Notes under the pieces: generated by a model
What the model was told of the DNA's origin: nothing
What the model saw: only the letters and a program-made list of their open reading frames with translations
The model's database searches: none
Shown: positions 1,430 through 62,642 of the stretch, in pieces
How positions within the stretch are numbered: the first letter of the stretch is position 1
Layout of the letters: each line of letters opens with the position of its first letter
From: Marsupella aquatica
Taxonomy: Eukaryota > Plantae > Marchantiophyta
DNA: 64,000 nucleotides
Assembly (NCBI GenBank): GCA_973895155.1
Contig: OZ316899.1
Coordinates: 16,643,974 to 16,707,973 of the forward strand
Reading direction: 5' to 3'
Made by a program: the position numbers and the translations under genes

Positions 1430-3391
1430 GAACATAAAAGATGTAAGATCCTTCTTGGGGTGCATTGGCTATTATCGCCGGTTCATCAAGGATTTTGCCA
1501 AGCTAGCTTTACCATTAACCAACATGCTCAAGGCAGGCGCAGACTTTGAACCCACACCAGAGCAAGTAACAGCAGTGGTGGAATTAAAGCAAATGTTAGT
1601 GGAGGCCCCAATCATGATAGCACCAGACTGGAACAAGGATTTTCATGTCTTTGTAGATGTCTCAGGCTTTGTATCGACTCAGTACTAAGTCAATTGGATG
1701 AGAAAGGAAGGGACCATCCCATATACTTTGCAAGCCGCCAGCTTGCTGATGCCGAACGAAATTACTCCACCACAGAAAGAGAAGCATTAGGAGTCATTTA
1801 TTCATGTAAAAAGTTTAGGCATTATTTGCTAGGGTACAAGGTAATCTTTCATACTGATCATGAAAGTTTGAAGTACCTAGTAAACAAGCCGGACCTCATA
1901 GGCAGGGTAGCAAGATGGATATTGTTATTATAGGAATTTGACTACGAGCTAAAAATCAAGCCGGGAAAACTACACGCCAATGCTGACTTCTTTTCAAGGA
2001 TCATAGGCAAACCTGCCATGGATTGCATTGATGATCGATTCCCCAACAAGGAGCTATTTGTTGTGGAATTAGCTGATACATGGTACCCTGAGATTTTACA
2101 ATTTCTCAGCACAATTAGATTACAGCCAGGACTAAGCCAAGAACAAGCCGCAGTTTTTCTGGGGAAGGACAGACAATATCAGTGCATTAAGGGCGTGCTA
2201 CACAGGTATGGAATCAGCGGCACAATTCAAAGATATTTGGAGAAGGGAGAGGTAAAATGAGTCTTACGAGCTATGCATGGAGAGGAGGCCGGAGGACATT
2301 TTGCTCCAGTAACCACATCTAAAAAAATATTAAATGCCGGTTACTGGTGGCCCACCTTGCACAAAGATGTCTATCAGTTTATCAAACAATGCGATTCTTG
2401 TCAACGAGCGGGAGGACCAAGGGCGTCCACAAGACATCCACTGCATCCTATTCTACCTCTGGCACCAATTGAGAAGTGGGGTGTTGATTACATTGGACCC
2501 CTGAAACCATTGACCCATCCTCGGAGGAACAAGTATATAATCTTGGCCACGGATTATGCAACTAAGTGGGTAGAGGCCAGGCCGACAACAAAGGATGATG
2601 CAATTACTATGGCTCAATTCATGTATGAGCAGATCTTCACCGGGTATGGCGCACCCCTAAAATTAGTTAGTAATAGAGGAACCCATTTTTTGAATGATAT
2701 AATCAGTCGTTTAAATGAGCAGTATTTAGTTAGACATAGGCCCACTACTCCTTACCACCCAAAGGCAAATGGGTTGACAGAACGAGCCTATGGAATTATA
2801 GGAAAAATATTAAACAAGACTGTAGCCTAAAACAAACTCAATTGGGATGATAAATTGTTTGCTGTTGTTTTTGGTTACAATTTAGCCTATAAATCCACTA
2901 CCGGTCATACACCCTTTTTCTTAACCTTTGGACAGGAAGCTCTGGTACCCATGCAACTTGAGATTCCTACATTTCAAGTTACAATTGAGGAGAGAGCCTT
3001 AGAGGAGGAAAGCCTAAAGGAGCAAGAATATAGATTAGAAGCCTTAGAAGAGGCAAGAATGATTTCATCCGAGAGAGTAGAATATAGACAGAATACCATG
3101 AAGCAATAGTATGATAAAAACTTGAAACCAGTTAGTATTCACACAGGAGATCTTGTGTTACTTTATGACAGTAGGTATAGTAGGTTTCCAGGTAAACTTT
3201 ACACTTGCTGGTTAGGACCCTTCAGGGTAACCATGAAGTTCTCCAATGGCTTTGTACAATTGGCCAACATTATTGGAGAGGTGTACCCGGTTTGCATTCA
3301 CTACGACCGCCTCAAGAAATACTATATGGACGAAGATGAAGTTGTTTGCAAGGACGTTTCACAATTGAGTGAAGAGCCATGTGATACCTAG
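1430..3391 (+). pseudogene. pol: Family A Ty3/gypsy pol remnant (RT end, RNase H, integrase)
   Basis: Colinear diverged copy of 12156-14137. Motifs FLGCIGYYRRFIKDF, YSTTEREALG, GGHF, WGVDYIGP and WLGPF; several in-frame stops. Confidence 0.95.
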
Positions 3392-3495
3392 CCAGGAATC
3401 ACTAGGCCAGTTTAAATGGTAAAATCTGGAGTATACCTTGGAAACACATTAGATAGTAACAAAAACAAGGAAAATATAAATAATTAAGGGTGACT

Positions 3496-6400
3496 ATGGA
3501 ACCCGGAAGTAAGGTCGCCGAGGGAGGGAACACAATTAGGGTTAGGGCGCGCTTAGTGCCAGCGGCTATGGGTAACCAACGGGAAGGAAGACCAGACAGG
3601 GGGGTAAGGACCGATCGCAAGGAATGGTGGCTCATTTGCAAGCACAAACTAAGCAGATGACTACGTGAAGCCAACTATTGTCAGCTGCTTAGGCAAGCAC
3701 TCTGGGCGGGAGCAAATACCGACTATTAACTCAAGAAGGGTATGAGCAACGTCAATCAAGATGCTCATTTTTGGAGATGCTTGTTTGAACGGGAAACTGA
3801 GTACATTGGGACCAACAAGGACGAAGAATCAGAAAGAGCAGCTCGAGAACGGTAGGAGCTCGCTCGACTGTGGGAGCTGCAGAAGTCTGCCTTCTTAGGA
3901 GGAGAACTCATCAAGGCTGAATTCCTGTGGACACCTACTGGCAACGAGCTAGACGACCTTCTATTTTGCGAGAACAAAATTGTCGGCATCCGGGAAGCCA
4001 TCAGCTGCTGCAACGACATACACTAGGAGTTGAAGGGTAGCACGGAGGGGTGGACAAAGGCAATCGTGCTCGGAAAAACATCCATGGCAGCCGCTATGAA
4101 GAGGAAAGGGAACAACAATGAAGAGGCCACCCCTGCAAAGAGAATGAGGTCGGCGACACCAAGGATGCCAGCCGAGCAGGGAAGCAAGAGGCCGGAAGAA
4201 GCACCCAACAGAGCAGCCCCGAGTCTTCCCCACCAGATGTCGCTCCCCCGAGCTTTGATGGGATAAAACAGATGGCACATGAGTTTCAGGAGCAACTCAG
4301 GAAAGAAGAGGAGGCAGCCCTGGCTAGGGAGAAGGATTTACCTAGGGGAGAATGGCCAGAAGACATCCGGCGGCTTGCAGAAAGATGGGGCAGCCCTCCA
4401 TCCACGATAGAAGATATCCAGAAGGCGGCTTGGGAACAAAGGCCGCGGTGGTTGATGTCGATGACTACTACTCACTCCACCTATGCTAAAGAAAGAGCCA
4501 TGGAGTACGGGGAGATGTGTGGGGAACTTGCGCTCAGCATCTTTGGGGAGGAGTTGGAGCAGGGACCCTTTTTCCAGAGAGAGATGTTGGAAAACACCCA
4601 TTGGAAGAAGTAGTGGCTTTGGAGAGAAGAAAGAAAGACGAGGTCATTCGATGGCTTAGAGAGAAGAAAGCCGAGGCAGAGGACCTGAAGGCGGCCAAGA
4701 AAGCCCAAGATGAGCTACGGATTACGCAGCATGAGCTAAACATCATGCAGGGGCAACTGGATACCGCTCAGTCTGATAATCAGATTATCAAGGATAAACT
4801 GACTCGGACCCAAGGGGAGTTGGCCAATGCGGTCAAGGAAAGGGAGAAGTGGAAGCAAGAGCTAAGGGACGCAGAGGAGGCCCACATAGCAACCAACAAT
4901 CAGGCCATGGCGGAGACCCAAAGGAGGGAGAGGGCATTGAAGGGGGAGCTTGAGGATATCCACAGAACCCTTGAGCAGAAGGAGGCCGAGTTAGGGAAAT
5001 CCTATCAAGGAATTATTGTGCTGCAGCAGGAGCTTATGTGGTGCGTCCCATGGCTCCCCAAACCCAAGAAACCCCCCCGCACAAGCCGATTCCCCTATTC
5101 CTCCTTCAAGATCTTCTTCAGTTGGTTGAGGAGGTACCCGTTGTAATCCCGGCTTGGGTTTGGCCTTTCTGCCAGGTAGACCTGAGCCTTGCCGATCTCT
5201 GCCCTCGGCAAGTTACAATGCATGGTCACCCGCAAGAAATCAATCATCTCTCCGATGTGTGGGTTGGTGTAGGTGTTTCGGAAGAAGTCATTCTTCGTTG
5301 ATGGTCCTAGGATTGACCGGAACTCCTTGTCAGTTAAGGTCTTCCTGGTATCAAGGAAATCCTTCCCATACACCCTCGTGGAATTGGTCTCGGGTTTCCA
5401 TGATCCCACGAATTCTAATAAGTCTGAGTCCGGCACCTCCGGCTTCAGCCATGGTAATCTTACGAAGGTTTCCAAGCCGGATCCAGCCATGAAGCCCTGG
5501 TACTTCTTGGTCTGCATGGCCGTAAAGCATGCATCCTCCTCCCGTGCAAAATGTAATTGCACTTCCTCTGGTAGGGTCGCCGCCCAGCCTTTCCAGGTGT
5601 CATCCTTTGTTGGAATGGCATTGATGGGATCGACCTCCTCCTCTTCGGCTTCTCCTTGCCTCCTGTTCTGCTGCTCTGCTGGTTTCCTTGGTGCCGCCGA
5701 CCTCGTTCTTTTTGCCGGGGTGGCCTCTTCGTTGTTGTTTCCTTTCCTCTTCATCTCGGCTGCCGTGAATGTTTCTCCTAGCACAGTTTCCTTTGTCCAC
5801 CCTTCCGTGCTACCCTTCAACTCCCAGTGCGCCGGTTGATGGCTTCCCAAATGCCGACAATTTTGTCTTCGCAAAACAGAAGGTCATCAAGCTGATTGGC
5901 AGTAGGAGTCCACAAGAACTCGGCCTTGATGAGTTCTCCTCCTAAGAAGATAGACTTCTGCAGCTCCCACAGTCGAGCAAGCTCCTGCCATTCTTGAGCT
6001 GCTCTCTCCGATTCTTCATCCTCGTAAGTCCCAATGTACTCAGTTGCCCGTTCGAACAGGCATCCCCAAAAATGTGCCGCTTGATTGATGTTGCTCATAC
6101 CCTCCTTGACTCGATTGTTGGTATCTGTTCCCACCCAGAGTGCTTGCCTAAGCAGCTGACAGTATTTGGCCTCCTGTAGTCGTCTACCCAGTTTGTGCTT
6201 GCAATTGAGCCACCATTCCTCGCGAGCGGTCCTTACCTCTCTCCTCCTCTAGTCTTCCCTCTCGTTGGTCACCCCTAGCCGCCGACGCTTAGCGCGCCCT
6301 AACCCTAATCATGTTCTCTCCCCCGACGTCCTTACTTCCGGCCTCGGCCCGGGTTCCATAGTCACCCTTAATTGTTTATATTTTCCTTGTCTTGTTACTA

Positions 6401-30102: not shown

Positions 30103-31412
30103 GAATTCCTGAAATTTTAGAGGAATTCAACGACGTGCTCTCGCAAAATCTACCTAAAGGTTTACCCCCGCGGAGAGAAGTGGATCACCAAGTTGAGTTG
30201 GAGTTGGGATCGGCTCCTCAAGCTAAAGCTCCTTATCGTCTAAACCTGAACGAGCAAATGATGTTGAAGAATGCCTTGGAAGAGTTGATCGACCAAGGGT
30301 TCATTTGCCCTAGTAAGAGTCCTTACGGGGCGCCCGCGCTGTTTGTGTCCAAAAAGGATGGTACTTTGAGATTGTGCACAGATTACCGGGCACTCAATAA
30401 GCAGACGGTAAAGAACAAGTACCCGTTACCTCATATGGATGACCTCTTTGATTGCCTCTCCGGGGCTAAGAAGTTTTCAAAGGTGGACTTGCGGTCTGGG
30501 TATTACCAGATCCGCATGGCTAAGGGAGACGAGTATAAGACCGCAATGCGCACAAGGTTCGGATCCTATGAGTTTTTGGTTATGCCGTTCGGGTTGTGTA
30601 ATGCAACCGCAATGTTCATGAAGATGATGAATACCATCTTTCATGACTTGTTGGACCAAGGAGTGGTCGTCTTTATTGACGACATCCTAATCTACTCGAA
30701 AACGTTGGAGGAACATGAGCAGTTGCTTAGAGAAGTGTTCTCTTGCCTTTGTAAGGCTCGTCTCTTTGCTAAACCTAGCAAGTGCGAGTTTGCGATAAAC
30801 AAGATTCAGTTCCTTGACCATACCTTTACCCCAGAAGGGATTACGCCTAGTCAGGACAAGCTTAAGGAGATCAAAGAATGGGAGCGCCCGTCCAATGTAA
30901 GGCAAGTTAGAGCCTTCTTAGGATTTACGGGGTTCTATCGGAGATACATGAAAGACTATGCGAGGATCGCGAGGCCCCTAAACGCGCTAACGTTGAAAAA
31001 CAAAGTGTTTGTGTGGACACAAGATTGCGAGTTAGCATTCCTAGAACTTAAGAGGTTCATGATAACGTCGCCGGTTCTAAAGTTACCTGAGATGGGGAAG
31101 CCGTTCGAGATTTGGACAGACGCAAGTGATTATGCCATTGGCGCCTGTCTTCACCAAGATGGGCGTCCTGTGGCCTTTGAGTCATGTAAGTTGGAAAATC
31201 ACTGGATCACACCGGAAAGGGAAATGTATGCTGTGATCTATGCGTTGAAGAAATGGGAGATTTACCTTAAGAACGGTCCCAAAGTGGTAATCCACACATA
31301 TAGCTCGCCAGCCGGGTACTTCAGTTCTAAGCCAAGGCTGAACCCCAAGGAAATGCGCTGGCAGATGTTCTTGGCGGATTTTGATTTCAAAGTCCACCAC
31401 GTTCTAGGGAAG
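30103..31412 (+). pseudogene. pol: Family B reverse transcriptase and RNase H
   Basis: GLPPRREVDH, SPYGAPALFV, DYRALN, DLRSGYYQ, FIDD and TDASDYAIGA. Cut at HVLGK by transposon D. Confidence 0.95.
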
Positions 31413-31960
31413 ATCAGCCTTTTCATTAAAAGTGTATTATTATTTTATTTATGTACATTTGGGCAATGAAAAATGTATTTTTGGGCGAGGAAAAGTGTAC
31501 ATTTGGCCAATGAAAAGTGTACATTTGGGGCTTTAAAAGTGTATATTTGAGTACATTTGAGTGAAAGAAACATATATTTGGCTTAAAAAGTGTACATTTA
31601 AGTGCAGTTGGTCTACAAAGTGTAACTTTGAGTGCAACAAAGTGTACATTTGGCCTAAAAAGTGTACATTTTCCTACCAACTCTTATTATAATCATTTAA
31701 AAGAAAGGAATGAATAGAAAAATATTTTTAATTATGCAAAAAAGCAAACATTCATATTCATAACATTCAAAAGTTTAGAAAATGAGGAGATAGTATAACT
31801 AACACTCAATGACATGGTCTCACATTAAAACTATTAGAATAGTAAATAACTAGTACGTAAGTTACTATGTTTGAATGAGTGTCGACTATTTACATAAAAA
31901 CTAGGTAAGTAACTATCTAAATTAATTTAATTATTATAGCTTCGCAAGTAACAACTAAGT

Positions 31961-34900
31961 CTACTTGTCCATCCTTTGGAGATAACATTGGACAGTTTGT
32001 AGAACATTTCGAGGAATCTTCAAACCTCTGCCCGCCATGTTTTCTTCTTTCATGCCAGATTTAAAACCATACATTGCAGAATTTGCATACTGCCAATGTT
32101 GAGCGTTCTCACCAAACCCTGGATCTCGTTCCCATGTCTTAGTGGACATGAAGCAGTTTAGATACCGTGCACTCTCAGTCACATCAAGTTTAGAGTGTTT
32201 AGGCCTCCACCATTTGACTGGAAACATTGGAGCATATTTTTGAGGCAGAGGAGGGTTTGTTGGAGATGTAGTTGGGACTTCATGCTTAGGGTCCACCAAA
32301 CCCAAAGCTCTCACTAACCAAAAATGACCTCCACCATTTTTATTCTCCCAATCATCCTCGGGTCAAAGAAATACAAAGTTCCTTTCATGGATATCCTGTA
32401 GGGGAATCCACCGTCCTTGTTCTCTCTCAGCTCAAGATCCAACAAATGGTGTTGCTTGATCTTCCATCTCTTCCAAGATCTCATTTTGAAGAGCCGTCAT
32501 CTCTGCATTCTCCTCATCTTCACTTGGAGGACCACTTTGTTCCGGTTGGTTGACCTTGTAACCAGTGCCGTGGTTAGTCTTAGGCCAAAATCTATTTTTC
32601 AAGGGAAATTGAGTACTTCCCTCCCCTTCTAGTGCGAGCCCATTTGTCAACAACTCCACAATTCTCTCCCAAAATTTCACAAGAGGAAATCTTTCCTTAT
32701 ATGCTATAGATGTCTCATCAGTGCAACTCCTTCTCAAAAAATCAAGGTACTTGTTAAGAAATGGGATAATCTCTTCAGATTTTTTGTGTATCTCTCCAAT
32801 GGATTTAGCTAAGGGCTCTCCACTAGGTAAAAGAAGAGAATTTGTTGTCAAATCTGTTGCCCAAATACACCTCCCTCCAACTGGAGCCCAAGCTTGCTTT
32901 ACATGGGACTTATACTAAAATATTGGTACATTATCTCTCATAGAGAAAATAAATGATACGGATTTTGAGTGACCTTGAATATCTTTAACTTTGAAAGTTT
33001 GAAGATATTCTTTGTAAAATGCAACTTCTTGTATCAATCTGGGAACTGGATGAATGCTCTCACATTCCCAAACCTTTGCCATAAGAGCAAGGAGAGTTGC
33101 AACTTCCTTGTGCTGAACTTGATATGATACCTTCGAAAAGAGTGCATCAACATCTTTGTGTGTATGACCAACCATTAGAAAAGACATTTGAACAGTTTCA
33201 AATACTCCTCTACTCACAAGCTCACTACAAAATGCCATGACAGTCTGGTTTTTGTTATCCTTTGCTGAGTTATCCATTTGCAGTGTTAGGTGCCTTGGCA
33301 AGGGCTTGAAAGATGGGCTGCCTTGTTCCCCATGCATGTCCCCTCCTTGATCCTCACCATGTTGGGTGGAGAGCGTCTCCGTCTGACTCTCGGCTGCATC
33401 TTCAAAACCAATATACCTATTCATTGGAATACTCTTTGGTTCCAAATATCCCTTAAAAAATGCATCAAAGTCAAGAAGGGCTTGAAAGAAAGGTCTATGA
33501 GGTTCCAAATAAAGGTCATCCAACATGTCACCTGTCTTGTCTCCATTGTACTCGTCAAGGTCTTGAAGACACTTAGCCAAGGATGTCACCGTGAAATCAA
33601 CATCTCTTGGCCAAAGGCCAGTGACACTAAAGTGTGCATAGACTCCTAGATTCCTTCCGTGGGTCAACATCCCTATGAGAGCAATAGGTAGTGGCATTCC
33701 ATGACCCGAAAGCGATTTAGGAGTACTAACCATTTTTGGAATCCACGTCTTTGCTTGATCCATCTTGTCGTGAATGATGCAAAGATATTCCCCTGGATAT
33801 TGCTTAGCCATCACTCGATGAGCATAGTAAACATATCTATGTGACATCTGCTCACAAAGATGTTGCGCTCGTTTTTCTTCAATTTCAGCATGCTCTTTTT
33901 TCCTTCTTTCTCGCATCAAACTATCTTTGTATTCACAACAAAGAGTACATTTGGCAAATGCACCATCTTTATGGAAACTGAAGTTTGCAAATGATTTGCT
34001 CCAAATCTTGTACAGAGTATTCTCTGTAACTGGAGGAAGCCCCTCTTCCTTCATCTTTGTTCTCACATCTTCCAAAATCTCCAACTTCTTGTAACATGCT
34101 GGAAGACGATACTCAATGAAGTCTGTCCCATGAGCCCCAGCATAAGGTATATGAGGCATGGGCTCTGCATTTTGAGTCAAAAAATCCTCCAACAGAGCTC
34201 GTGCATGCAAGGTATTTGTCCTTGTTTTCATGGAGCCCGTGTTTCCATGGAACCCAATTTTCCAACCCTCCACATATCTCCTTTTGTAATCATAATATTT
34301 CATGTGGCTAAAGCTATGGATGATTGCAAATGCATGTCTACATACGACCATACCCTTGAGAACATGGTGCCCCTTATCACGAACATCATCTTCTCTATAG
34401 TGGAAGAGGTTGAAAATGTGTGATGTTTTTGACTCGCTAGACATCCCGTGAAATTCTATCCGGATATCTTCTATGTCTTCTCTTGGCATAGTCAGACAAC
34501 ATTTCTGCTTGCAACAATTCTCTCTTTTAATTTCATCAATCGAAGCTTCCGTTGTTTTTGAAACTGCCTTGGTTTCCAACAACCTTCTCTTCTTTTCAAT
34601 CGGATCTACATGAGTCCTCTTGTTGAAATTGTATAGCCTTGTGCGCGGCATTCCCCTATCATTTACATTTGGATAGAGATCATCCCTATCCATCGTCTCC
34701 ATCCTCTCTGAACCTTCAACCAAAATGTCCGACAAAAATTTCCCGTTTGCAAGTAGTTTTGTTGAATCAATCCGCCACCGAACCAAAGTAATTACTCCCC
34801 TATGGAAATTGGAAAAGTATTGTGATTCCACCACATCTTTCACAGCAATCCCTACATGGTCCTCACCAAGGATTTCATCGTCAACCGCCGTCGTTTCTTG

Positions 34901-35750
34901 AGGCACAGTGATGGTCCCCGTGGCAACCCTATTGGTTTGATCTGAACCGATGTATAGTTCGACCAACTCTGACATCCAATTTGACCGTTGGAAATAGTCA
35001 CAATTAGTTTTAGAAATTTCAGCTGAGGGAGACTTCGCAACAAAACTCCGCTCTATGTTGATATCATCGCCCGCAGCCTTCTTTGAGAAACTTTTTCTAC
35101 TTCGGACATCTGCCACATCCCAGAGAACCCATGAGTCTTTTGCCTCGTCAATTGTTTCAGCCCTGCTGTGTTTGTAAGGTAAAACCCTACTCCCATGAAT
35201 GACATCAGTGACCCTCACACTGATCCGTGATTCACCAAGTAAAATGTTGTGAATCTTTCCGTTGGATTTGTATTGAAAACAACTCCAAGGGCTACACAAC
35301 ACCCAAAGATGAACATTTCAACCTCATCCCCTTGCCTCAGAGTGGTCGATGAGTCCTCCTCTACAATTGGATTTTTTTCCCAATTACTCTCCAGTTGATT
35401 TGAACAACTACCTAAACCCTAAACTCTAAACCCTAAACCCTAAACCCTAATGCATTTTTGAGAATTTATTATCGTTGATAGATATGCGCAAGACAAATCC
35501 CAAATAACGCAAGAATCAATGGCATCAAAAAGGTTTTCTGCCCGAGGCATTGGAAATGGTAGTTTTGTGGTTCGGTCAAAAACTTTCTCAATGAGAATGC
35601 CCATTCGATTCTCTCTCAACAATATCTTTTGAACACTATCTTGCGGGTTGATTTTTTGAATTGTCCCGCTTGCAACATCGTAACCACCAATTGTCAATAT
35701 CACATTGTCGCCTCTCAAAAATATTCCGGTCATTCCTACAACGTGTTCAC
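31961..35750 (-). pseudogene. Transposase of element D
   Basis: Main ORF 32915-35302 with KCTLC..H, IIHDKMDQAK, LQMDNSAKDNKN and FLMVGHTHKDVDALFS (DDD-type triad). Extensions 35440-35733, 32432-32851 and 31961-32314 lie across stops and frameshifts. Candidate splice acceptor near 35751. Confidence 0.8.
35411..35450 (+). repeat. Interstitial telomeric repeat (CCCTAAA)n
   Basis: About 5.7 units, one of them CTCTAAA, within the transposase N-terminal region. Confidence 0.9.
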
Positions 35751-35814
35751 CTGCACAATTTGAAATGTAAGGTATTAGTTAACAATGGTCCCAACTAGGA
35801 AGCAAATAGGTGTG

Positions 35815-36975
35815 AACCCTATCCAAGGAAAGTGCGCAAATAGGGATCATCCCCATCAAGCAAAATAATAGGTCCCTAAACAATCCTTATCTAGCCCTAA
35901 GATCCCTGATCCCTATTCAAACGTTGGATAGGGATGATCCTTGTCCAGACGGCAGATAGGTTCTGTCACTGTCCAAACAATGGACATAGATGATCCCTGT
36001 AAACGGCGGATAGGGATCATCCCTGTCAAAAATACGGTCAGGGATGATCCCTGTCAGAACGGTGGATAGGGTCTGTCACTGTCCAAAGGGCGGACACAGC
36101 TGATCCCTGTCCAAATGGCGGATAGGGTCTATCACTGTCCAAACAATAGACATGGATGATTGAAGGTCCGGATCACTTAGGATCACTCAACGGTCCTATC
36201 TGAAAGTAAAACCTTTCATATTGGGTTCCCATAAAGCAAATACCTCAAACGACAGAGAGGGATCATCCCTATCCAAATGGTGGACAGGGATCATCTCTAT
36301 CCAAAAGCCGGACAGGGATCATCCCTATCCAAACGGTGGACAGGGATCATCCCTATCCAAATGGTGGACAGGGATCATCTCTATCCAAAAGCCGGACAGG
36401 GATCATCCCCATCCAAACGGTGGACAGGGATCATCCCTATCCAAAAGCCGGACAGGGATCATCCCTATCCAAATGGTGGACAGGGATCATCTCTATCCAA
36501 AAGCCGGACAGGGATCATCCCCATCCAAATGGTGGACAAGGATCATCTCTATCCAAATGGTGGACAGGGATCATCTCTATCCAAAAGCCGGACAGGGATC
36601 ATCCCCATCCAAATGGTGGACAGGGATCATCCCTATCCAAATGGCGGACATGGATCATCTCTATCCAAACAGTGGATAGGGATCATCTCTATCCAAAAGC
36701 CGGACAAGGATCATCCCCATCCAAACGGTGGACAGAGATCATCCCTATCCAAACGGTGGACAGGGATCATCCCTATCCAAAAGCCGGGCAGGGATCATCC
36801 CCATCCAAATGGTGGACAGGATCATCTCTATCCAAACGGTGGACACACAATATTCTTATCCAAAAGCCGGACAGGGATCATCCCCATCCAAATGGTGGAC
36901 ATGGATCATCTCTATCCAAACGGTGGACAGACATCATTCTTATCCAAACAGCACATAGGGATGAACCCTATCAAA
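35815..36975. repeat. 28-bp tandem array of a palindromic unit
   Basis: GGACAGGGATCATCYCTATCCAAA plus AGCC/TGGT/CGGT; about 26 regular units at 36250-36975 and degenerate units at 35815-36160. Confidence 0.95.
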
Positions 36976-38344
36976 ACAGCTAACAGGTATGACCCTTGTA
37001 CGGAAAGTTAACCTCTACACACTAATTTAATGTTTGACCAAGAAAGGTTGGATTGAGATGATCCCAATCGTGAGTTGGGCTGGATACCCCAACCTTAAGT
37101 AACTTAGATATACAATTCCTAAATTTGATACCAATGGAATATTCTAGAATTGAGTTGAAAGTTACCTGTAATGGAAATGATTCTTGAACACAAAACTCAC
37201 TTAGTTTATGTTATCAAACCAAGTAATAAAATACTTTGTTGAAGGGGTAGTTATCAGTAAGCTGGTAAACTAAATGCTTCAGGGGTGTGGAAGAAATTAA
37301 AACTAGATGTTCTATCTAGAAAACAAGAGTGGCTCAATGGGGCTCCGTAATGAACGGACCTGGTTGACAGACTGAATGACAATCTAGAAATGAAAATACC
37401 AAATGAGGAGCAGCCGGACCAGCCCAAGTATCTTATACCATTTGTTCAAGATTGCTCTTATGGATAAGGCAATGCGTGATCAGCCTTAACCAGCGGCGGA
37501 GTTTAGGGTCGAGTGGATGAGGTAGTCCACGCCACACAACAAATTTGAGCGGCACAATTTTAGGGCAGCCTTGTGATTAGGGTTTGCCTCGCACGGCTGT
37601 TTGCCTCGCCTCGCACCTCGGCCTCCCACGTGTTGTGCCTCGCCTTCCACCTCGGCCTCACCTTGGAGGGGGGGTAAAGGAGGCAAGAGGTCCTACTTGG
37701 GCCTCATTCTTCTTCCCTCCTCCCTCCGCTCCTCCTCTTCTCCGCTCTTGCGCTCCTGTGCTCCTCCGCCTCATTTGCTTCACTCCGCCTCATTTGCCTC
37801 ATTCACTTCACTCTCCTCCTGTGCTTCACTCTGCTCCTCTGCTTCACACTAAAGTTTTTGCCCTAGCCGCCACGTTTAGTGCCCTAGATCTAACGCTTTG
37901 TGATCCTCCACGTGTCCATATGGCCATGTGTCACAAGATGGATCCATCTAGACCTATTCATGTGTCTTTGGTCATTGAGCCAATAGAGGAGATAGACCTC
38001 TCCTCCATTGAGGATGTGGTCGACATGGCCCTTGAGGATTCCAGAGCCTTCCAATTGCTCAATCCAAGTGAGTATCTTGGTAACAAGTTGAATATTTGTG
38101 CAGTGGACAGAGATCATCTCTGTCCAATTGGATAGAGATGATCCTTGTCCAAGTAGAGTCCAAGTAGAAGATAGTGATCTTTATTAGGAATTGGATAGAG
38201 ATGATCTCTGTCCAAACTGAGGACAGAGATCATCCCTGTCCAATTGGATAGGGATCATCTATTTCCAAAATGACGATAGAGGATGTCCAACCAGAGGATC
38301 GAAACTGTTCTATCAGAGGATGCTGAGGATCTTTATTTGGAACT

Positions 38345-38613
38345 GGATAGAGATGATTTCTATCCTCTACTTGGATAGGGATGATCTCTGTCCAATTCCT
38401 AATAAAGATAATCTTTGTTTGATCAGAGGATACTGACGATCTTTATTAGGAATTGGACAGAGATCATCCCTATCCAAGTAGAGGATAGAGATCATCCCTA
38501 TCCAATTGCTAATAAAGATCGTCAGTATCCTCTGATCGAACAAAGATTATCTTTATTAGGAATTGGACAGAGATCATCCCTATCCAAGTAGAGGATAGAG
38601 ATCATCCCTGTCC
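38345..38613. repeat. Near-perfect inverted repeat (arms about 130 bp) built from the same palindromic motif
   Basis: 38345-38475 is the reverse complement of about 38483-38613 with few mismatches. Confidence 0.9.
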
Positions 38614-40334
38614 AATTGGATAGGGACCATCTCTATCCAAACTGTGAGAAAACCTCATCTTTGTCGATTACAAATTAAGATTTTCCAAACTAATATGCAT
38701 GGATGAGACTATTGTAGGGAGCAATCTAAATGGATTGAAACCAGCAATTTCAGAATCAGATTGCTCCGAGGGAGTCTTGTTGGAGCAGAGCAAACCAGAT
38801 TTTCATTGGGGTCTTGAGTTCTCTAGAGTTGATTTTGATTTCCTTAGCACGTCAGAGAGACGGGATCCCATTTTGTGCATAAAGGTCAGAACAGAAGATC
38901 AAGAGACTCTTGTACTCGGACCTGTAGTCTTCATTGGAATTGAAGGAAGAGGGTTTGTTTCCGTCATTCTTGAGCTCCATGAAAGGATACGATGGGTTAA
39001 GCTACATCTACCATCAAAGGCGTATTCTTCAGAGTTCAATGTTGAGTGGTCTGCTTTTGGAGAACTTGGCGTGATGGCAATGGGCTTTTTCCCTAAGTCG
39101 TATTCAACTCAAAAGGTGATTGCTGGAGTGAAGGGGATTCTTCCACTTGAATCATGTATGGGTTTCAATATGTGACGCTGAATATCCATAAACACCAAGG
39201 GAATTATACATTTCCAGTGACATGGATTTTAAATAATTTGCTCGACAAGGCAGGATTCCTATCTTCAGAATCAGGTGTTTGCCTTGACAAGAAAATTGCA
39301 TTTGCAGAGGAGTTTGCGATGGATAATGCAAAAAAGTGGGTAGAATCATTACCCAAGCCTACAAATGTTGCACCTGTAGCGGTGAACGAGCTTCCAGTAG
39401 TTGTTAACAAAGAAGTTCCCAAAGAAGTTCCCAAACCTAGAAAAATATCTCAGGAGACAACAACAGGGACTGCAGGAACAATGGTTGGGACAAGCACCAA
39501 ACAAGTGGTAGGGAAGCAAAGACTAAGAGAGAGGAAGGGTCACGAGAAAATTGAGACATTGCCAAAGGAACCCGAGAAGAAGCCAGTAGCGAAGAAACAG
39601 AAAACTGACAAGTTTTATTTGCGGTCAACCCCTACAGACGTACAGATGCTCCTAGAAGATGAGGGAGACAAACTTGATGCCTCTGAGGAGAAGAAGGTCT
39701 TAGAAGGAAATGATGTTCTCCAGAGAATAGAGTAGTACTATACTTTTGGGATAAATGAACTATTTTCTATTCCAGTGGAGAATTGTGCCTACACCTGCAA
39801 GATTATGTTACAGGGATGCTCAGTAGTACCCATGTGAAGCACATAGCCAAATCCATGGTCAAAAACCCTAGACATGAACCTCACGTTGCGGACCTGCTTC
39901 CTTATAGTCCAAAGCTTAGAAAGTTGCTCCATTTTGACAGCACGTAGAACGACCGTAAAGACTTTCTTGCAGGAGTGAAGAAAGGCGAGATTGGTTTCTT
40001 TGCCATCATTGGGCAACATTTGGCTAGGGCGGCCAAGTGGGTTCTCGAATGGGCCAAAACTGATGCCAAGCTCACAGTGGTGGCAAAAAAGTTAAAATAC
40101 AGGAAGTCTAGATTATTGTCAGACCTTACACCATCGGCTATATTGGTTGAGCACTCAATGAGATCAAATGCCATCAATTCGACGATGGTGTTTCAATCGT
40201 GCTTCAAAGATACAATTGTTCATGCAAGGAAAAAATTCCTTGAATGCGGAGGACCAAGAAAGCCAAAGCACGGGGACAACAAGTCAAACGCCCAAGAGAA
40301 TCAAAAATTTCAGGTGAGAAACATTTTTCTTGTT

Positions 40335-40748
40335 TGGACAGAGATGGTCTCTGTCCAAGAGTGTGACCGTCCGTTACATTGATTTTAGTTCAATATATTT
40401 CTGGTTATGACTTGGATGGAGATGGTCTCTGTCCAAGAGTGTGATCGTCCATTCTAGAGATTTCTCTTCCTTCTACTTTTGGTTATGACTTGGATGGAGA
40501 TGATCTCTGTCCAAGAGTGTGATCGTCCATTCCAGAGATTTCTCTTCCTTCTACTTTTGGTTATGACTTGGATGGAGATGATCTCTGTCCAAGAGTGTGA
40601 TCGTCCATTCCAGAGATTTCTCTTCCGTTTACTTTTGGTTATGACTTGGATGGAGATGATCTCTGTCCAAGAGTGTGATCATCCATTCCAGAGATTTCTC
40701 TTCCTTTTACTTTTGGTTATGACTTGGATGGAGATGGTCTCTGTCCAA
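40335..40748 (+). repeat. 78-bp intronic tandem repeat (about 5 copies) carrying the palindrome variant TTGGATGGAGATGATCTCTGTCCAA
   Basis: Units start at 40403, 40481, 40559, 40637 and 40715, within intron 40314-40820. Confidence 0.92.
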
Positions 40749-42072
40749 CAAGCAAGTGATAGTTTGTTGTCAAATCTCATTGATTGTAGATAACTTATTT
40801 TCCCCTAATTTTGACTGTAGGATTATTTGGCATTGGCAAGGATGACCATGGGGAGAAAAGACTTGAAAAATGTATATTGGTTGCTCTTTGCCAAGAATGA
40901 TCTTTTCAAGCTCTGGCAGTTAGTGTGCCAAACGTGGATTGATGGACATCTTCCTGATGGTACACAGGGAAACAAAAGGTCCAAAAAGGGTATAACGGTC
41001 GCAATGTTTCGTTGTTTTGATGGTGAAATCTCAAGTAGAGATTTGACCAGAATTTTGAACAAGGTGAAGTCAGGTCAACTTTTATTGAAGAAGGATTCGA
41101 CAAATAAGTCAGATGTTCCAGCAATGGAGGACTTTACAAAGGAGGTGAAGATATTGATCAAACTGAAGTCTCTTATTGGAGATTACTACTTCAAGAAGGA
41201 TCCAAAAAAACTTCCCAACAGATAGTGATTGGGTTAAAGTAATTGAGGTCCTCCCATTGTTAGGTGCCGAGTTGGAGTTGAACACGTGCCGAAGAGCGGC
41301 TGGTGAAGTATGGTTGACAAATTTATTGAAGTCTAATCATACAAAGGAGAGTGAGATATTGCCAATGACATTGGTGATGCGTCTAGATGATATTTAGTGT
41401 CAAAAGTTTGGCGGTGGGACAAGTTCTCGGACCCAACCGTGGGTCACATTTTTTAGTAACAACCTAATGAAGATAGTGGATCCGGAGTCGTTGGAAGAAC
41501 AATCTCCAACATGCTCTCTTGCAATTTTTGATTTCAGCCGACTTCAACGGAAGGAGTGGACCGAAGCAGAGATTTTGGTACTCTTCCAATACATAGTAGA
41601 GCTACCACGGAATCCCACCATTGTTGTGATGATAACTGTCCATCCGGGTTACCTTGTACTGAATGTCCTAAGCGCTCTTCGTAAATTAGGACATTCAAAA
41701 ACTCTGACTATTCACATTGAGTATGGGAGTTATTACCGAGATGATCAACCTCACCCTCACGACTCATGTTGGAAGGGAGGAATAGAAGAAGTTATCTTTG
41801 CGGGAATTTCTCGCGAAGAGAACGTCAGCTGGGATGAAGTGTTCAAGCCCAACCAGATGAAGCCAAAATGGGTGTACGGTGAAAAGGATACTGATTTTGT
41901 GGTTGAGAAGGTCAAGGGAAAGGCAAAGGACGCGGACGAGGAGTCATTACATGAAGATCTAAGAAATATGATGACCCCAGAAGAGGCGGCAATACTTCTG
42001 CACATGGCACCTCGATTTGAGACGGTCGGCGCTTGGGGTGGGTGGGTGAATCCTCACGCCAAACCCACACGG

Positions 42073-42921
42073 TGTTGCGAGAACTTAAAGTTAGGGCTCC
42101 TCGGGCAAACTACGCATTTCTGGCTGCGATCGGGATAGGTGACAAGCACTTTTCGGAGCGAACTCTCACTCCTTTATATTTTTTACTTTTCTCACAAAGG
42201 TTACAATAGGTGCCCTCAAGTAAGCTTGCCCGCAAGAGTCTGGTAGCTGGCCCTACGGCGGGCCACTACCTCTAACTTGTCGGGTAGAACTCCTCGAGCG
42301 ACTAACTACTCAAAATCTGACGGAAAAACTATCCTCCTTAGCTCACAAAACCAAAAACTCGACTAGCTACTCCACTAGTCTAAAACAGCTCGCACGGAAC
42401 TCAGGCCTGGACCAACGAGGCTCTGAACTTGAGAAATCCTCGCCTGGATTGACAAGACTCCAAACTTGAGAAATCCCCGCCTGGATCAACGAGACTCCAG
42501 ACTCGAGAAATTCCCCGCCTGGATCAAAAACTCCCCACCTGGATCAAAAACTCACTCGGAACTCCAAAACCACCGCACAACAGTCAAGTTCCGCAGAACG
42601 GAGCAGAACTCACAGAACGCAACTCAATAGATCTCAATAGACAACCGCCAACCTCAATGAGCCGACGCTCAAGTCTTAAGTAGCATAAAAAACCCAACCA
42701 TCCAGCCTGAGCCAGCTGCCAGCTGCCAGGCTCATCCAAACTCCAAGCCTGGTGACTCACCCAAACACCAAACCTGGTGATGACGAGTCACCCAATCGCC
42801 AAACCTCAATCCATCCAACCAAGCAGCCCCTCCGAGTCAGCATGCACGCAACCCAACCGGGAGGCATCGCCCTTCATCCCCTATAAAAGCCATTCCTGAG
42901 CCGAAATCTTTCGGCACGATA
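42073..42921. mobile_element. Probable solo LTR of another family inserted in the methyltransferase-like region
   Basis: TGTTG...CGATA (likely from CGACA), flanked by ACGG/ACGG. Removal restores the frame KPTR|MIQK. Internal 36-bp repeats at about 42425-42550. Confidence 0.75.
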
Positions 42922-44250
42922 ACGGATGATCCAAAAGATCATCCAAACATTGTTCGAGCCGGGGGATTTGATTCTTGACTTTTTTTCTGGCGGTCAAGTG
43001 ATGAAGGCATCCCTTTTTTCTCAACGTGAATGTTTGTTTATTGTGACTCTCAACATGAGAGACATTTTGTGGAAGCATATGCTTCGTTCCTTTGTGAGAA
43101 GGTTCCCACCATCAAAGATCGTTATGATCGCTATGTCGGAGGAAGTTCTAGACATTGGGAACCCTCTTCTGCCGTTGTGCTATTGACGATGAATCAGATG
43201 GTGATCAAGAAGATGGAGCTGACCAATCAGTCAAAGACAATGGGCCATCGGAGGGGGCATATGTGAAGAATTTGGATGACCGAGTTGGCGAGGGTGAAAA
43301 TATTGACCTTGTGGAAGACGATATGATTGTTGGATCTGCACCTTGGAGTTCACCAATTACAGATGTTGCCCCCATGGGCCCCTACGAGGGCCCGTATGAT
43401 GATAACTTGGATAGAGATGGTCTCCATCCACAATTGCCTGGACAAGAGATGGAAGTTGATACGTTTGAAAAACTGTCTTCACAACAACCTTCTCAATCAA
43501 GGTGCAAAGAGGCATGGTGAATCCAATGAACTCGACACATTGGGATTGAGACCACAACCCATCCAAATAGCTGACATTCCCGTGAATGAAGCAAGTGCAT
43601 CCACGACTGCTGACAACCAGGCAGGTGCTTCAATTTGTCCCGATACACTCTTTTCCGCTTCTGATGACAAATTGGTGTTTGTTCGATCACAATCAAGAAC
43701 CATTATCCTTCCACTCTCAAAAAAGAAAGGGAAGAGAGTAGGATCAACTGGATATAAGTCACTTGAATATGATTGTCGATGTTACGTGTGGCAAAGTGGA
43801 CCCGATGTAGGAACTGAAGTTGCATTGGATGCTGCTCAATCAATTTTGAACAATGACTCGTTCAAAAAGCACAAGAAAGATCCAACTTATAGAAGTGGAG
43901 AATTGGGATTGATAATTCCGGTTTGGTCTGCACCTTATTGGATAGAGGAGAGTACCTCCGATGTCAATTATGAGATCCAACAAGAGCTCGGTGATGATAT
44001 CTTGATTGATGAATATGGATCTCATTGTTAGCCAAGGTCTAGATTGAGCCATGTGACCTTATCAATTTGATATAATATAGTCTGTATAATTATACTTCAA
44101 GTTTAACAATTAGAGCATCAATATCAATATCCATCTCCTCTTTACGGTTTCTCAATGAATACGGTCAGTATGCAGGATTGACAGAGATGATCTCTATCCA
44201 AACTTCAAATGTGGTTTTTTCTCTAAGATTGGTATTTGTTGCACTTGCAG

Positions 44251-45287
44251 AACCAAGACCTTGTTCCATCAAGCGCAAATTGCTGATTTTGGATCTTAAC
44301 AAAATACTTTGGGATTCAGTTGAATTCCAAAGCAAGGGAAAATCCAGAAATGTTGTGACCCCAAGTGGAGTGCATTGGGATAGAAAAAATGGAATTAGTC
44401 GCATGTATACAGAAAGGCCAGGGATCCATGAGTTTCTAAAGTTGGTTTTTGACCGATTTGACGTTGCAATTTGGACATGTGCTGGGGTACAACAAACAGT
44501 GAAAATGTTGAACATGATGTTCACTGCTGAGGAGAGATTGAAACTTAAGTTTGTATTCACACAGGTGGAAGCCTTTGACACAGGCATTCAAAGGCGTGAC
44601 ATTACAAATGGAAAGGCAAATCTGCTACTGAAGGATTTTCGGGTGGTATGGAGTGGATTTGGAAATCTATATGATGAAACCAACACCCTCCTTGTGGATG
44701 ACTCCCCCCTTAAGGCATTTGCCAACCCAAGCATGACCGGACTATTTCCAGTGCCCTACACGCATGCCAATTGTGGGGATAATTTTCTTCTTACAATTCT
44801 TTGGCCTTGTCTTGATAAACTATCACATGCAAGTGACATTAGATGTTATCTTCTTCTTAACTCTCCACTGTGGTCTCTATTGCACATAAAGAGAGACAAG
44901 GTAAAAAATGAAATTACTTATGATCAACTTAGTAAGAGATGCGCAACAAAAATTTGGAAGTCACAGTTTACGCATAGTGTGTTGGACCTCAATAGCAATG
45001 AGATTCCTTGGAACGTGAAGCATCGTAGATGTAGTTTACGTCCTGAGGCAGAACTTGATGATGCACTTGTCACCTCACTTGCTAAAGCATTTGTAGGACG
45101 GGACTATTCAGGTCCGTATAGAGAAAATCCCAGACACTTTTTGCGGGAGATTATAGCCATTAGGAACAACACCACCAAGTTTCAGCTCCCTGAAGATAAA
45201 GGTACTTGCAACCGTGACACTAGGGTAGATAGTAAAGGAGACAGGGGCACGTGCTCACATACACATTGTAAGGAGCAATTTGTTTAG
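44251..45287 (+). CDS. FCP1/SCP (NIF)-type HAD phosphatase-like domain, last exon of the cargo region
   Basis: KLLILDLNKIL, RPGIHEFL..FDRFDVAIWT, LLKDFRVVW and NTLLVDDSPLKAFANP; candidate acceptor TTGCAG ending at 44250. Confidence 0.85.
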
Positions 45288-45696
45288 AGATCTGACTCGT
45301 GTTAAGCCCCTTAGATAGAAGAAATACATTGTAAATTTGGAGATAATTGTATATTATTTTATAATCTATATGGAGTTATGTCATTTTGTTCACACATATT
45401 CAAGGGCTTCTTTGTGCTGAAATGTTTTTATAAGTATGATCTCTATCCTACTATTCTTTGTGAATTAATAAATAATGATCTCTATCCTATTATTCTTTGT
45501 GAATCAATAAATGATATAATATGTATTATTTATTAATATAATACTAATATGATTTGGCCTATAAGGTGTACATTTAGAGACCAAAAAGTGTACATTTTGG
45601 TTTCTTAAAGTGTACATTTGGGGACATGAAAGTGTACATTTCAAGACTGATTTGTGAACAAAAGAAAATACACTTTTAATGAATAGGCTGATGAAG

Positions 45697-46412
45697 ACAA
45701 ATGCGGCAGCGGACGCATTATCGCATAAGGACCAACATCGGGTCAATGGGATCACGATGCTCGAATCCGAGTGGCCAAAGGTTCTAGCCGCAGCGTATGG
45801 GGATGACAGGTTAGCTAAGGAATGGCAAAGCAATGGGGGTAGCCAAGGCAAGGTAAGGCATGTATTGTTGGGGTTGGATAAGACGCATAATGTCTAGTTA
45901 TGGCAATACAAGCAGAGGCGTGTGTACATACCGGAGTCTCTAAGGTTAGAGGTTCTGCAAAAGTACCACGACTCGCCCTCGGGAGGGCATGGAGGACAAG
46001 CCGCTACGTATCGCAGCATGTCACGAGATGTGTATTGGCCGGACATGAAGCAATCGGTCCTTCAACACGTGCAAAGTTGTAACTCATGCCAAAAGAACCA
46101 AACGGTCTATAGGGCAAAAGGAGGACTACTACAACCCTTACCAGTAGCTGCGGCTCCATGGGAGTCTATCTCCATGGACTTCATTGTTGGGTTACCTGAG
46201 TCCCACGGCAATAACTCCATCTTAACAAATGTGGATCATTTTTCCAAGATGGCGTATTTCTTGCCTACTCCAAAGATGGTTTTGGCCCGAGAGGTTGCCA
46301 ATCTAGTATTTGACAATGTCTTCCGACAATGGGGATTGCCGTTGCATATCCTGTCCGACCGCGATACCAAGTTCACAGGCCATTTTTGGAAGGCGTTGTT
46401 CCGGTTATCCGT
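45697..46412 (+). pseudogene. pol: Family B integrase, 3'-truncated
   Basis: HDSPSGGHGG, YWPDM..CNSCQ, PWESISMDFIVGLP and SDRDTKFTGHFW; similarity stops before the catalytic E. Confidence 0.9.
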
Positions 46413-61900: not shown

Positions 61901-62642
61901 CCTGCCTCCTGCTCTGCTGCTCGGCTGGCTTCTTTGGTGCCGCCGACCTCGTTCTTTTTGCCGGGGTGGCTTCATCGTTGACAGCTCCCTTCCTCTTCAT
62001 CTCTGCTGCCGTGGAGGTTTCTCCTAGCACCGTTGCCTGGGTCCACCTTTCTGTGCTACCCTTCAATTCCTAGTGTATGTCGTTGCAGTTCTTGATGGCC
62101 TCTCGAATGCCGATGATTCTGTCTTCGCAAAACAGAAGATCGTCGAGCTGATTGGAAGTAGGAGTCCACAAGAACTCATCCTTGATGAGTTTGCCTCCTA
62201 AGAAAGCCGTCTTCTGCAGCTCCCACAATCGAGCGAGCTCTTGCCGTTCTCGAGCTGCCCTTTTTGATTCCTCATCCTCGTAAGTCTTGATGTACTCAGT
62301 TGCCCGTTCGAACAGGCATCCCTAGAAATGTGCCACTTGATTGACGTTTCTCATACCCTCCTTAGGTCGATCATCATTATCTACTCTCTCTCCGAGTGCT
62401 TGCCTAAGCAGCTGACAGTAGTTGGCCTCCCGTAGTCGTCTGCCTAGTTCGTGCCCTAAACCCTAAACCCTAAACCCTAAACCCTAAATGAGCCACCATC
62501 TCTTGCAAGCGCTCCTTACCCCTCTCCTCTTCCGGTCCTTCCTCCCGTTGATCCTTCCTAGCTGCCGACGCTTAGCGCGCCCTAACCCTAATCGAGTTTT
62601 CACCCCCAGCGTCCTTACCTCCAGCCTCGGCCCGGGTTCCAT
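58974..62642 (-). pseudogene. Accessory ORF in the solo LTR
   Basis: ORFs 61392-62066, 60579-61307, 60000-60521 and 58974-59774 match 14217-17938. Confidence 0.88.
62454..62488 (+). repeat. Interstitial telomeric repeat (CCCTAAA)5
   Basis: Five perfect units, absent from the three other A LTR copies. Confidence 0.95.

Follow-up and report, generated by a model that had tools for sequence, protein, structure and literature searches.

The window analysed here is a stretch of 64,000 nucleotides (nt) from the liverwort Marsupella aquatica (assembly GCA_973895155.1, contig OZ316899.1, positions 16,643,974 to 16,707,973 of the forward strand), and it holds, at 31413-45692, a large DNA transposon with terminal inverted repeats (TIRs) and a 4-bp target site duplication (TSD), GAAG. 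Two units lie divergently within the element. The minus strand carries a transposase gene; on the plus strand is a cargo unit, in which a region resembling ParB and DndB proteins, a domain with the fold of a DNA methyltransferase (MTase) and a phosphatase-like domain of the NIF/FCP1 type follow one another (Table 1). Judged by comparison of its members, the family to which the element belongs is one of autonomous 13-14 kb TIR transposons of bryophytes, both liverworts and mosses. The window copy itself is dead, being broken by premature stops, frameshifts and a nested insertion. We consider, with moderate confidence, that the cargo of this dead bryophyte transposon is an element-specific DNA-recognition or regulatory factor that does not perform canonical methylation.

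Table 1. Features of the transposon and its borders, with positions in the 64,000-nt window
Feature	Position	Strand	Basis or context
Left TSD copy, GAAG	31409..31412	.	Flank read; excision restores Ty3/gypsy pol frame
Left TIR, 26 nt, begins ATCAGCCT	31413..31438	+	Inverted-repeat match to right arm
Left subterminal repeats, 6x AAAGTGTACATTTGG, ~22-nt spacing	31451..31673	.	Motif count
Transposase gene: TNP1-like N-terminal repeats and DUF7869 DDD core	31961..35733	-	Open reading frames (ORFs), Pfam, Calypogeia fissa alignment
Telomere-type (CCCTAAA)n run in the 5' part of the transposase gene, separating TNP1-like repeats 1 and 2	35411..35450	.	Repeat scan
Palindrome array of GGACAGGGATCATCCCTGTCC type, 28-nt period, ~25 copies plus 56/110-nt variants	35907..36996	.	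Transposase-cargo spacer
Second palindrome array, 25/28/55/110-nt periods, 135-nt hairpin arms	38104..38640	.	Just upstream of cargo gene
Cargo N-terminal region: conserved domain and Lys/Pro-rich linker	38648..39732	+	Two frames here, single ORF in L004
ParB/DndB-like part of cargo; in-frame stop 39945-39947	39759..40313	+	Consensus alignment
Intron, donor CAG/GTGAGA, acceptor TGTAG/GAT, phase 0	40314..40820	+	Splice sites and annotation of protein P0033
Helical linker domain of cargo; frameshift near 41207-41212, in-frame stop 41395-41397	40821..41394	+	Alignment
MTase-fold domain, N-terminal half; LAIFDFSRL at motif IV (DPPY) position, ends VNPHAKPTR	41398..42072	+	
Nested high-copy insertion splitting the methylase-like domain	42073..42922	.	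Absent from other copies
MTase-fold domain, C-terminal half; motif I GDLILDFFSGG; 1-nt deletion at 43032 shifts frame	42923..43066	+	
Conserved C-terminal cargo domain (KLVF..GxTGY..DEYGS) and stop codon	43570..44031	+	Alignment
NIF/FCP1-like HAD exon, after acceptor-like TTGCAG; motif I LILDLNKIL; Cys/His-rich tail	44251..45287	+	
Right subterminal repeats, 4x AAAGTGTACATTTGG motif	45558..45643	.	Motif count
Right TIR, 26 nt	45667..45692	-	Inverted-repeat match to left arm
Right TSD copy, GAAG	45693..45696	.	Flank read

Boundaries and insertion site

The two TIR arms differ by a single mismatch, at position 9 of 26 nt, and their 22-nt core occurs at only two sites in the 64 kb, one at each end of the element, where 0.00 are expected. 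Inward of the arms a subterminal 15-nt motif, AAAGTGTACATTTGG, is repeated six times at the left end and four times at the right, where 0.17 copies are expected. When the element and one GAAG are excised in silico, the peptide ..HHVLGK is joined in frame to TNAAADALSHK.. within a Ty3/gypsy pol; since the pol frame is restored, this is a true insertion with a 4-bp TSD. An earlier, sequence-only reading had described a large DNA transposon with a DDD transposase, exact TIRs and a 4-bp TSD. The boundaries, the GAAG copies on both flanks with the pol frame that they restore, and the match of the transposase to DUF7869 bear that description out, save that the TIRs, although present, are near-exact.

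The insertion host is the pol region of a Ty3/gypsy-type long terminal repeat retrotransposon (30135-31412 and 45697-45900). It covers reverse transcriptase, RNase H and the first part of the integrase region, and its frame is open on both flanks.

The cargo in other copies and species

Two elements of the liverwort Calypogeia fissa, L005:1530-14198 (TSD TTCT) and L007:2514-16254 (TSD AGAG), have TIRs related to those of the window and display its full layout, with the transposase and, divergent from it, the ParB-like part, the helical linker, the methylase-like domain, the C-terminal domain and NIF. On the contigs L001, L003 and L004 a NIF ORF comes after the methylase-like ORF, which stands alone on contig L002. 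In Riccia sorocarpa (L008) there is a more distant version, a divergent ParB-like/MTase-like gene and the start of NIF beside the transposase, and in the moss Ceratodon purpureus (L009) only NIF-like ORFs accompany the transposase, without the methylase-like part. In two organisms, contigs of four public runs show the family in multiple copies. Across species the cargo genes keep the same order at 30-58% amino-acid identity, and because this layout is conserved the cargo is integral to the family and no one-off capture; absence of the cargo from other copies was one of the findings that the sequence-only reading had named as fatal to its proposal, and L005 and L007 show the opposite.

The ratio of nonsynonymous to synonymous substitution rates (dN/dS) between L005 and L007, a comparison which that reading had also called for, lies between 0.20 and 0.48 for every cargo segment and is 0.33 for the methylase-like domain. 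With dN/dS below 0.5 throughout, the cargo is therefore under purifying selection. The cargo exons were searched one at a time. With the exon 41398-42072, phmmer was run exhaustively against 1.8 billion representatives and recovered no more than 30 relatives; ordinary host methylase families were not among them.

Three further observations concern these copies. The divergence between L005 and L007 is mosaic, with dS of 0.08-0.20 over the transposase half and 0.37-0.78 over the cargo half, a pattern which suggests that sublineages of the family have recombined or exchanged modules. In Ceratodon L009 the NIF-like ORFs are three in tandem (2727-5875), upstream of the DUF7869 transposase. All three TSDs are homopurine or homopyrimidine tetramers (GAAG at 31409-31412, TTCT at L005 1526-1529 and AGAG at L007 2510-2513), which may reflect a target preference, from a sample of three only.

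The methyltransferase-fold domain

The methylase-like part has a genuine fold of the beta class of N6-adenine (N6A)/N4-cytosine (N4C) MTases, with motif IV placed before motif I, as judged from profile and structural matches. The family profile matches M.RsrI at 9.8e-8, and an AlphaFold (AF2) model built on 27 sequences (pLDDT 84.5) found in Foldseek only beta-class N6A/N4C MTases as its best matches in the Protein Data Bank (PDB), namely M.BceJIV, CcrM, M.PvuII, M1.HpyAVI, M.MboIIA and M.RsrI, at 2e-7 to 3e-6. The best viral structure match is a phage fusion of a ParB/sulfiredoxin domain to a methylase; a tblastn search of phages with the MTase part yielded no more than weak matches, in motif I, to mycobacteriophage methylases. 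Against Pfam PF01555, whose gathering threshold is 26.7 bits, the window piece scores 17.9, P0008 19.6, P0018 23.3, P0002 23.5, L005 26.8 and P0012 29.2, and P0021 receives no PF01555 score.

Several features of a beta-class MTase are kept, namely VNPxAKP, GDTVLDFF, an acidic residue after strand 2 (YSD) and the Asp of motif IV. The catalytic motif IV itself, (D/N/S)PP(Y/F/W), is found in none of the 21 family sequences that cover the position; the consensus there is LAIVDFSR, within a pattern LA[I/F][V/L]DF[S/T/A..]R, with the variants DF[S/T/A/G/V][R/K/Q], DLLR and DLAR, and Riccia reads FLDLTH. Motif I is conserved as VLDFFSGG, with a glycine loop that lacks one residue by comparison with the FxGxG of M.RsrI. 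With motif IV replaced in every one of the 21, canonical amino-methylation by the cargo is unlikely. A motif that has been replaced and then conserved, in a domain under purifying selection, argues for a retained function other than canonical amino-methylation.

For the sequence-only reading, which had proposed an amino-methyltransferase from the signature of motif I and the preceding HPxxKP-like segment, the outcome is divided. The Rossmann MTase fold for which it advised a profile and structure search was recovered (M.RsrI at 9.8e-8, Foldseek at about 1e-7), as beta class, whereas catalytic motif IV is absent in 21 of 21 sequences and the glycine loop of motif I is altered. The peptides that it quoted are present, IIGQHLARAA in 39975-40382 and HAKPTR/MIQKIIQ..DFFSGG as a join across 42073-42922. 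The latter, given there as spliced, is a real join, but it crosses a nested insertion and not an intron.

The phosphatase-like domain

The FCP1-type HAD domain of the sequence-only reading was recovered as Pfam NIF (PF03031) at 1.6e-14 and 54.4 bits, over a threshold of 21.8, although the second Asp of its DxDxT motif is Asn. L005, L004 and L001 score 55-65.7 bits, and the range for the family is 1e-14 to 5e-18; among solved structures UBLCP1 (3shq) comes nearest. Conservation extends to the Asp that serves as nucleophile, to T in motif II and to DD in motif IV. At the DxDxT position the window, L001, L004, L005 and L007 read LDLN[G/K] and L003 reads LDCNG; elsewhere the sequence is LDVEG in Riccia, DIND, DIKG or CVNG in Ceratodon, and LDIDYT in UBLCP1. 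On alignment, the branch to which the window belongs thus departs from the catalytic motif DxDx(T/V) by Asn in place of the second Asp. Two things set the family apart from the known NIF/FCP1/SCP phosphatases: the second Asp, which is Asn here, Glu in Riccia and Asn, Lys or nothing in Ceratodon, and a long C-terminal extension with a Cys/His-rich tail.

The ParB-like part

The family consensus of the ParB-like part is FLAISGQHSARAA, where the window copy reads FFAIIGQHLARAA, and it is preceded by a VPVE..I strand and a ..MIxNP..EPQ.ADLIPY segment. Compared with the GxxRxxA box and the DGQHR box of DndB, the consensus SGQHSARAA has G, Q and H in common, as well as ARAA at the beginning of the helix, whereas Ser stands in place both of the first Asp and of the Arg of DGQHR. 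The Atlas model of the C. fissa protein P0033 has the ParB_N and DndB clusters as structural neighbours, at TM 0.51-0.57, and by language features its neighbours are the ParB_N and DUF6551 clusters, at scores of 0.90-0.92, and fungal DUF3723 as well. The ParB assignment follows these Atlas neighbours, which we take as leads only. In PHROGs the only match, at 0.047, is to a 'DNA binding domain' family. A hypothetical protein of Klebsiella phage Miami, found by tblastn at 0.07, was rejected as a relative, having no Pfam domain and an hhalign probability of 0.4% when compared with the alignment of the ParB-like part.

For residues 1-215 of P0033 the nearest Atlas clusters by language features are fungal DUF3723 proteins. 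DUF3723 is associated with the Starship giant transposons (bioRxiv 10.1101/2021.12.13.472469), a hint that unrelated mobile elements of eukaryotes repeatedly carry ParB-like accessory proteins.

Palindromes

A palindrome with the core GAGAT[G/C]ATCTC (at most one mismatch) occurs 27 times in the window, 25 of them inside the element, where fewer than one is expected. The sites lie in the spacer between transposase and cargo, in the intron between the ParB-like part and the linker, in the gap before the NIF exon and, once, in the transposase ORF. The two matches outside the element (28324 and 28432) have no palindromic context and were set aside as chance. In C. fissa the palindrome has a different sequence with a common core and occupies the same relative places, and those of Riccia and Ceratodon, each quite different again, are dispersed through the non-coding parts, Ceratodon L009 carrying a dispersed near-palindrome of its own. 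The intron between ParB-like part and linker also holds palindromes in L002, L005, L007 and Riccia. Because the position is conserved as the sequence changes by lineage, the pattern suggests sites that co-evolve with a binding protein.

Gene structure and decay of the window copy

The intron at 40314-40820 is well supported by its splice sites and by an annotated counterpart in C. fissa P0033, and contains a 78-nt array of 5.3 units with six palindromes. Downstream, the methylase-like ORF stops after DEYGS in all loci, and a splice donor at this end that would fuse it to NIF was looked for but none is conserved across loci. The NIF exon is preceded by an acceptor-like site and has no nearby or conserved ATG, for which reason it is probably spliced to some upstream exon. 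The conserved N-terminal (38648-39172) and C-terminal (43570-44028) domains of the cargo matched no Pfam family.

Decay of this copy had been claimed from the sequence alone, and comparison with the intact ORFs of L001, L004 and L007 agrees. It shows that the reading frame shifts near 39100-39150, near 39780-39800 and near 41207-41212, that in-frame stops stand at 39945 and 41395 and that 1 nt is missing at 43032, all of these lesions being private to the window copy; to them is added an insertion of some 849 nt, with 4 nt of microhomology (ACGG) at the joint. Joints skip 853 nt at this place in four of four runs, and in C. fissa the region is contiguous. Since other copies lack the stretch it is a nested insertion and not an intron, and a contig depth several-fold above that of the element around it marks it as a high-copy repeat in its own right. 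Tandem repeats of 37 nt and 20 nt lie within it, and no TIR was recognised.

Transposase and superfamily placement

The ORF 32915-35302 (minus strand) matches Pfam DUF7869 at 2.7e-40, and both the upstream TNP1-like repeat (35440-35733) and the C-terminal part, to 31961, align with the transposases of C. fissa; here the frame is interrupted by stops at 32915-32917 and 32432-32434. The N-terminus is variable, and a word-based search with the whole protein yielded a single relative, against 80 with residues 470-795; a homologue is present in Physcomitrium. In an alignment of 16 relatives from liverworts, mosses, bivalves and a sea urchin, the consensus contains HDKMD, D243 of QxDNxxxxNKN is invariant and D283 and D285 of GHTHxDxD are nearly so, and by their position these Asp residues would be the catalytic ones.

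The Sola superfamily is defined by a DDD transposase and 4-bp TSDs, its elements having TIRs and a length of 2-15 kb (PMC10741241, summarising Bao et al. 2009), and is reported in the moss Physcomitrella (PMC10741241). The present family is like Sola in its DDD transposase, its TIRs, the 4-bp TSDs of all three elements, a comparable size and occurrence in mosses. The difference is that Pfam names the core only DUF7869, and placement is by TSD and DDD, so that membership of Sola is only probable. Our literature searches found no description of a ParB/MTase/NIF accessory unit for Sola and no paper mentioning DUF7869.

Telomere-type repeats were noticed twice in the window. The TNP1-like repeats that flank the run at 35411-35450 adjoin directly in C. 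fissa, and a second (CCCTAAA)n run of the plant telomere type, at 62454-62488, lies far from the element.

Comparison with known systems

The closest published precedent is the PAG cassette of red algae, in which Plavaka, Zisupton and Mutator DNA transposons carry a PF01555 methylase, a ParB-like gene and inverted-repeat arrays, and whose authors propose that the ParB-like protein (PAG3) binds the repeats of its own element (bioRxiv 10.1101/2025.02.11.637652). Compared by description, the two systems share a methylase, a ParB-like protein and adjacent inverted-repeat arrays on a DNA transposon. They differ in that the red-algal methylase is fused to SET and the ParB-like protein to a 2OG oxygenase, as two genes on CACTA-type elements, whereas the bryophyte cargo is predicted to be one protein, with a degenerate catalytic motif and an added NIF-like gene, beside another transposase family and in land plants. 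Pfam searches found no SET or 2OG domain in any member of the family.

Phage and prophage fusions of ParB to an N6_N4 MTase likewise place a ParB-type N-terminal domain before a beta-class MTase (PMC12704722; PMC4738411). The phage enzymes keep DPPY or SPPY, which here is lost, and the cargo has in addition extra N- and C-terminal domains and introns. DIRS1 retrotransposons offer a parallel for the loss, as their N6A-MTase-like domain is inactive, with catalytic and substrate-binding residues substituted (PMC4738411). In both cases a mobile element has kept the MTase fold despite substituted residues, but the DIRS1 domain is of the PCIF1-like MTase group, lies in a retrotransposon polyprotein and is without a ParB-like part.

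A further likeness may be drawn, by analogy, to the way in which accessory proteins and DNA motifs are paired elsewhere. ParB binds parS, and the VANC anti-silencing proteins, which belong to the Arabidopsis VANDAL (Mutator) elements, bind VANDAL motifs. Like VANC, the cargo would be an element-encoded accessory protein accompanied by short lineage-specific motifs in the element's own non-coding regions. The two have no relation in sequence or fold, and the function here is putative.

Interpretation

The mechanism that we propose is that a single multi-domain cargo protein (N-terminal domain, ParB/DndB-like part, helical linker, MTase fold and C-terminal domain, with NIF following) would bind the palindromes scattered through its own element, and that such binding may aid either expression, through anti-silencing, or transposition. 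The phosphatase-like protein may be a partner, or a decoy for targets of the phospho-CTD type (CTD, C-terminal domain). The wider inference of the sequence-only reading, that the element encodes DNA-related machinery of its own, holds, and this machinery is conserved. Of the anti-silencing and self-marking that it had put forward, the lineage-specific palindromes give indirect support to the former, as to self-recognition in general, while self-marking by methylation finds none.

Three other explanations of the cargo were weighed against this. It might be a host-gene fragment captured once, as by Pack-type elements, and of no role for the transposon, to which the many stops and frameshifts of the window copy would answer well. 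These lesions are private to that copy, however; other species have the same gene order, their proteins being 30-58% identical, dN/dS stays below 0.5, and the 30 relatives found by phmmer include no ordinary host methylase family, so that we regard capture as extremely improbable. A cassette that is selfish in its own right, retained for itself or because it is of general use, and hops between transposon lineages without recognising its carrier, would fit the excess of synonymous divergence in the cargo over the transposase of L005 and L007 (0.37-0.78 against 0.08-0.20, indicating module exchange), the moss relatives with NIF-like genes only, and the report of PAG genes on Plavaka, Zisupton, Mutator and Fanzor elements (bioRxiv 10.1101/2025.02.11.637652). 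We nonetheless think it unlikely, as every locus seen pairs the cargo with the same transposase family in the same orientation, and the palindromes change with the lineage of the element and sit inside the introns of the cargo.

That the cargo is an active, non-canonical DNA amino-methyltransferase marking its own DNA is, in our estimate, quite unlikely too. In its favour are the beta-class fold with VNPxAKP, GDTVLDFF, the acidic residue of YSD and the motif IV Asp all kept, the dN/dS of 0.33 over the domain, and the precedent that liverworts use a prokaryote-type N4C methylase, MpDN4MT1 (bioRxiv 10.1101/2021.02.12.428880). It has to contend with a motif IV that shows PP and an aromatic residue in none of 21 sequences and is DLTH in Riccia, with an SGG loop one residue shorter than that of M.RsrI, with members that mostly fall below the gathering score of PF01555, and with the view that the motif-less METTL14 and the DIRS1 domain are inactive (PMC4738411).

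A number of points weigh against our own preference, that the cargo is a regulatory factor specific to the element. Non-canonical catalysis would still find room, given that D, F and R are conserved in place of motif IV and that selection is purifying. The ParB claim of the sequence-only reading is neither confirmed nor refuted, since only the Atlas neighbours (TM 0.51-0.57) speak for it: five versions of the domain gave no Pfam match (E up to 1-5), a 10-sequence profile against the PDB recovered no ParB and only spurious fimbrial and ATPase matches, and our own AF2 model was poor (pLDDT 48), with nothing above noise from VIA-align and Foldseek against the PDB. Binding of the palindromes by the cargo is wholly conjectural; their true binders could be the TNP1-like domains of the transposase or host factors, and it is also conceivable that they are functionless hairpin satellites. 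The gene model was built from ORFs, a reading of splice sites and the automatic annotation of a single protein, P0033; the stretch was found in none of the runs recorded as RNA. NIF could be part of the MTase-like protein, an alternatively spliced product or a gene of its own.

A more specific form of the proposal, which is possible but doubtful, is that the element carries a eukaryotic analogue of ParB/parS. A ParB-like protein with a catalytically retired methylase fold would recognise lineage-specific palindromes that are kept by concerted evolution in the element's own promoter spacer and introns and, with a pseudo-phosphatase related to the CTD phosphatases of RNA polymerase II, would shield or activate the element, having evolved independently of VANDAL and VANC. 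If true, this would be a sequence-specific system of self-recognition and anti-silencing in land plants.

Few transposon proteins that recognise their own DNA are known, and at the strength stated above the finding adds liverworts, a reduced form in mosses and a different transposase family. The phage-like architecture of ParB and N6_N4, with a motif that was replaced and then conserved, makes the family a natural case in which to ask what a methylase fold does after methylation has stopped, and whether element-specific palindromes serve as binding sites. For annotation, the consequence is that cargo genes of this kind will be miscalled as host methyltransferases and phosphatases in bryophyte genomes, though they are borne by transposons.

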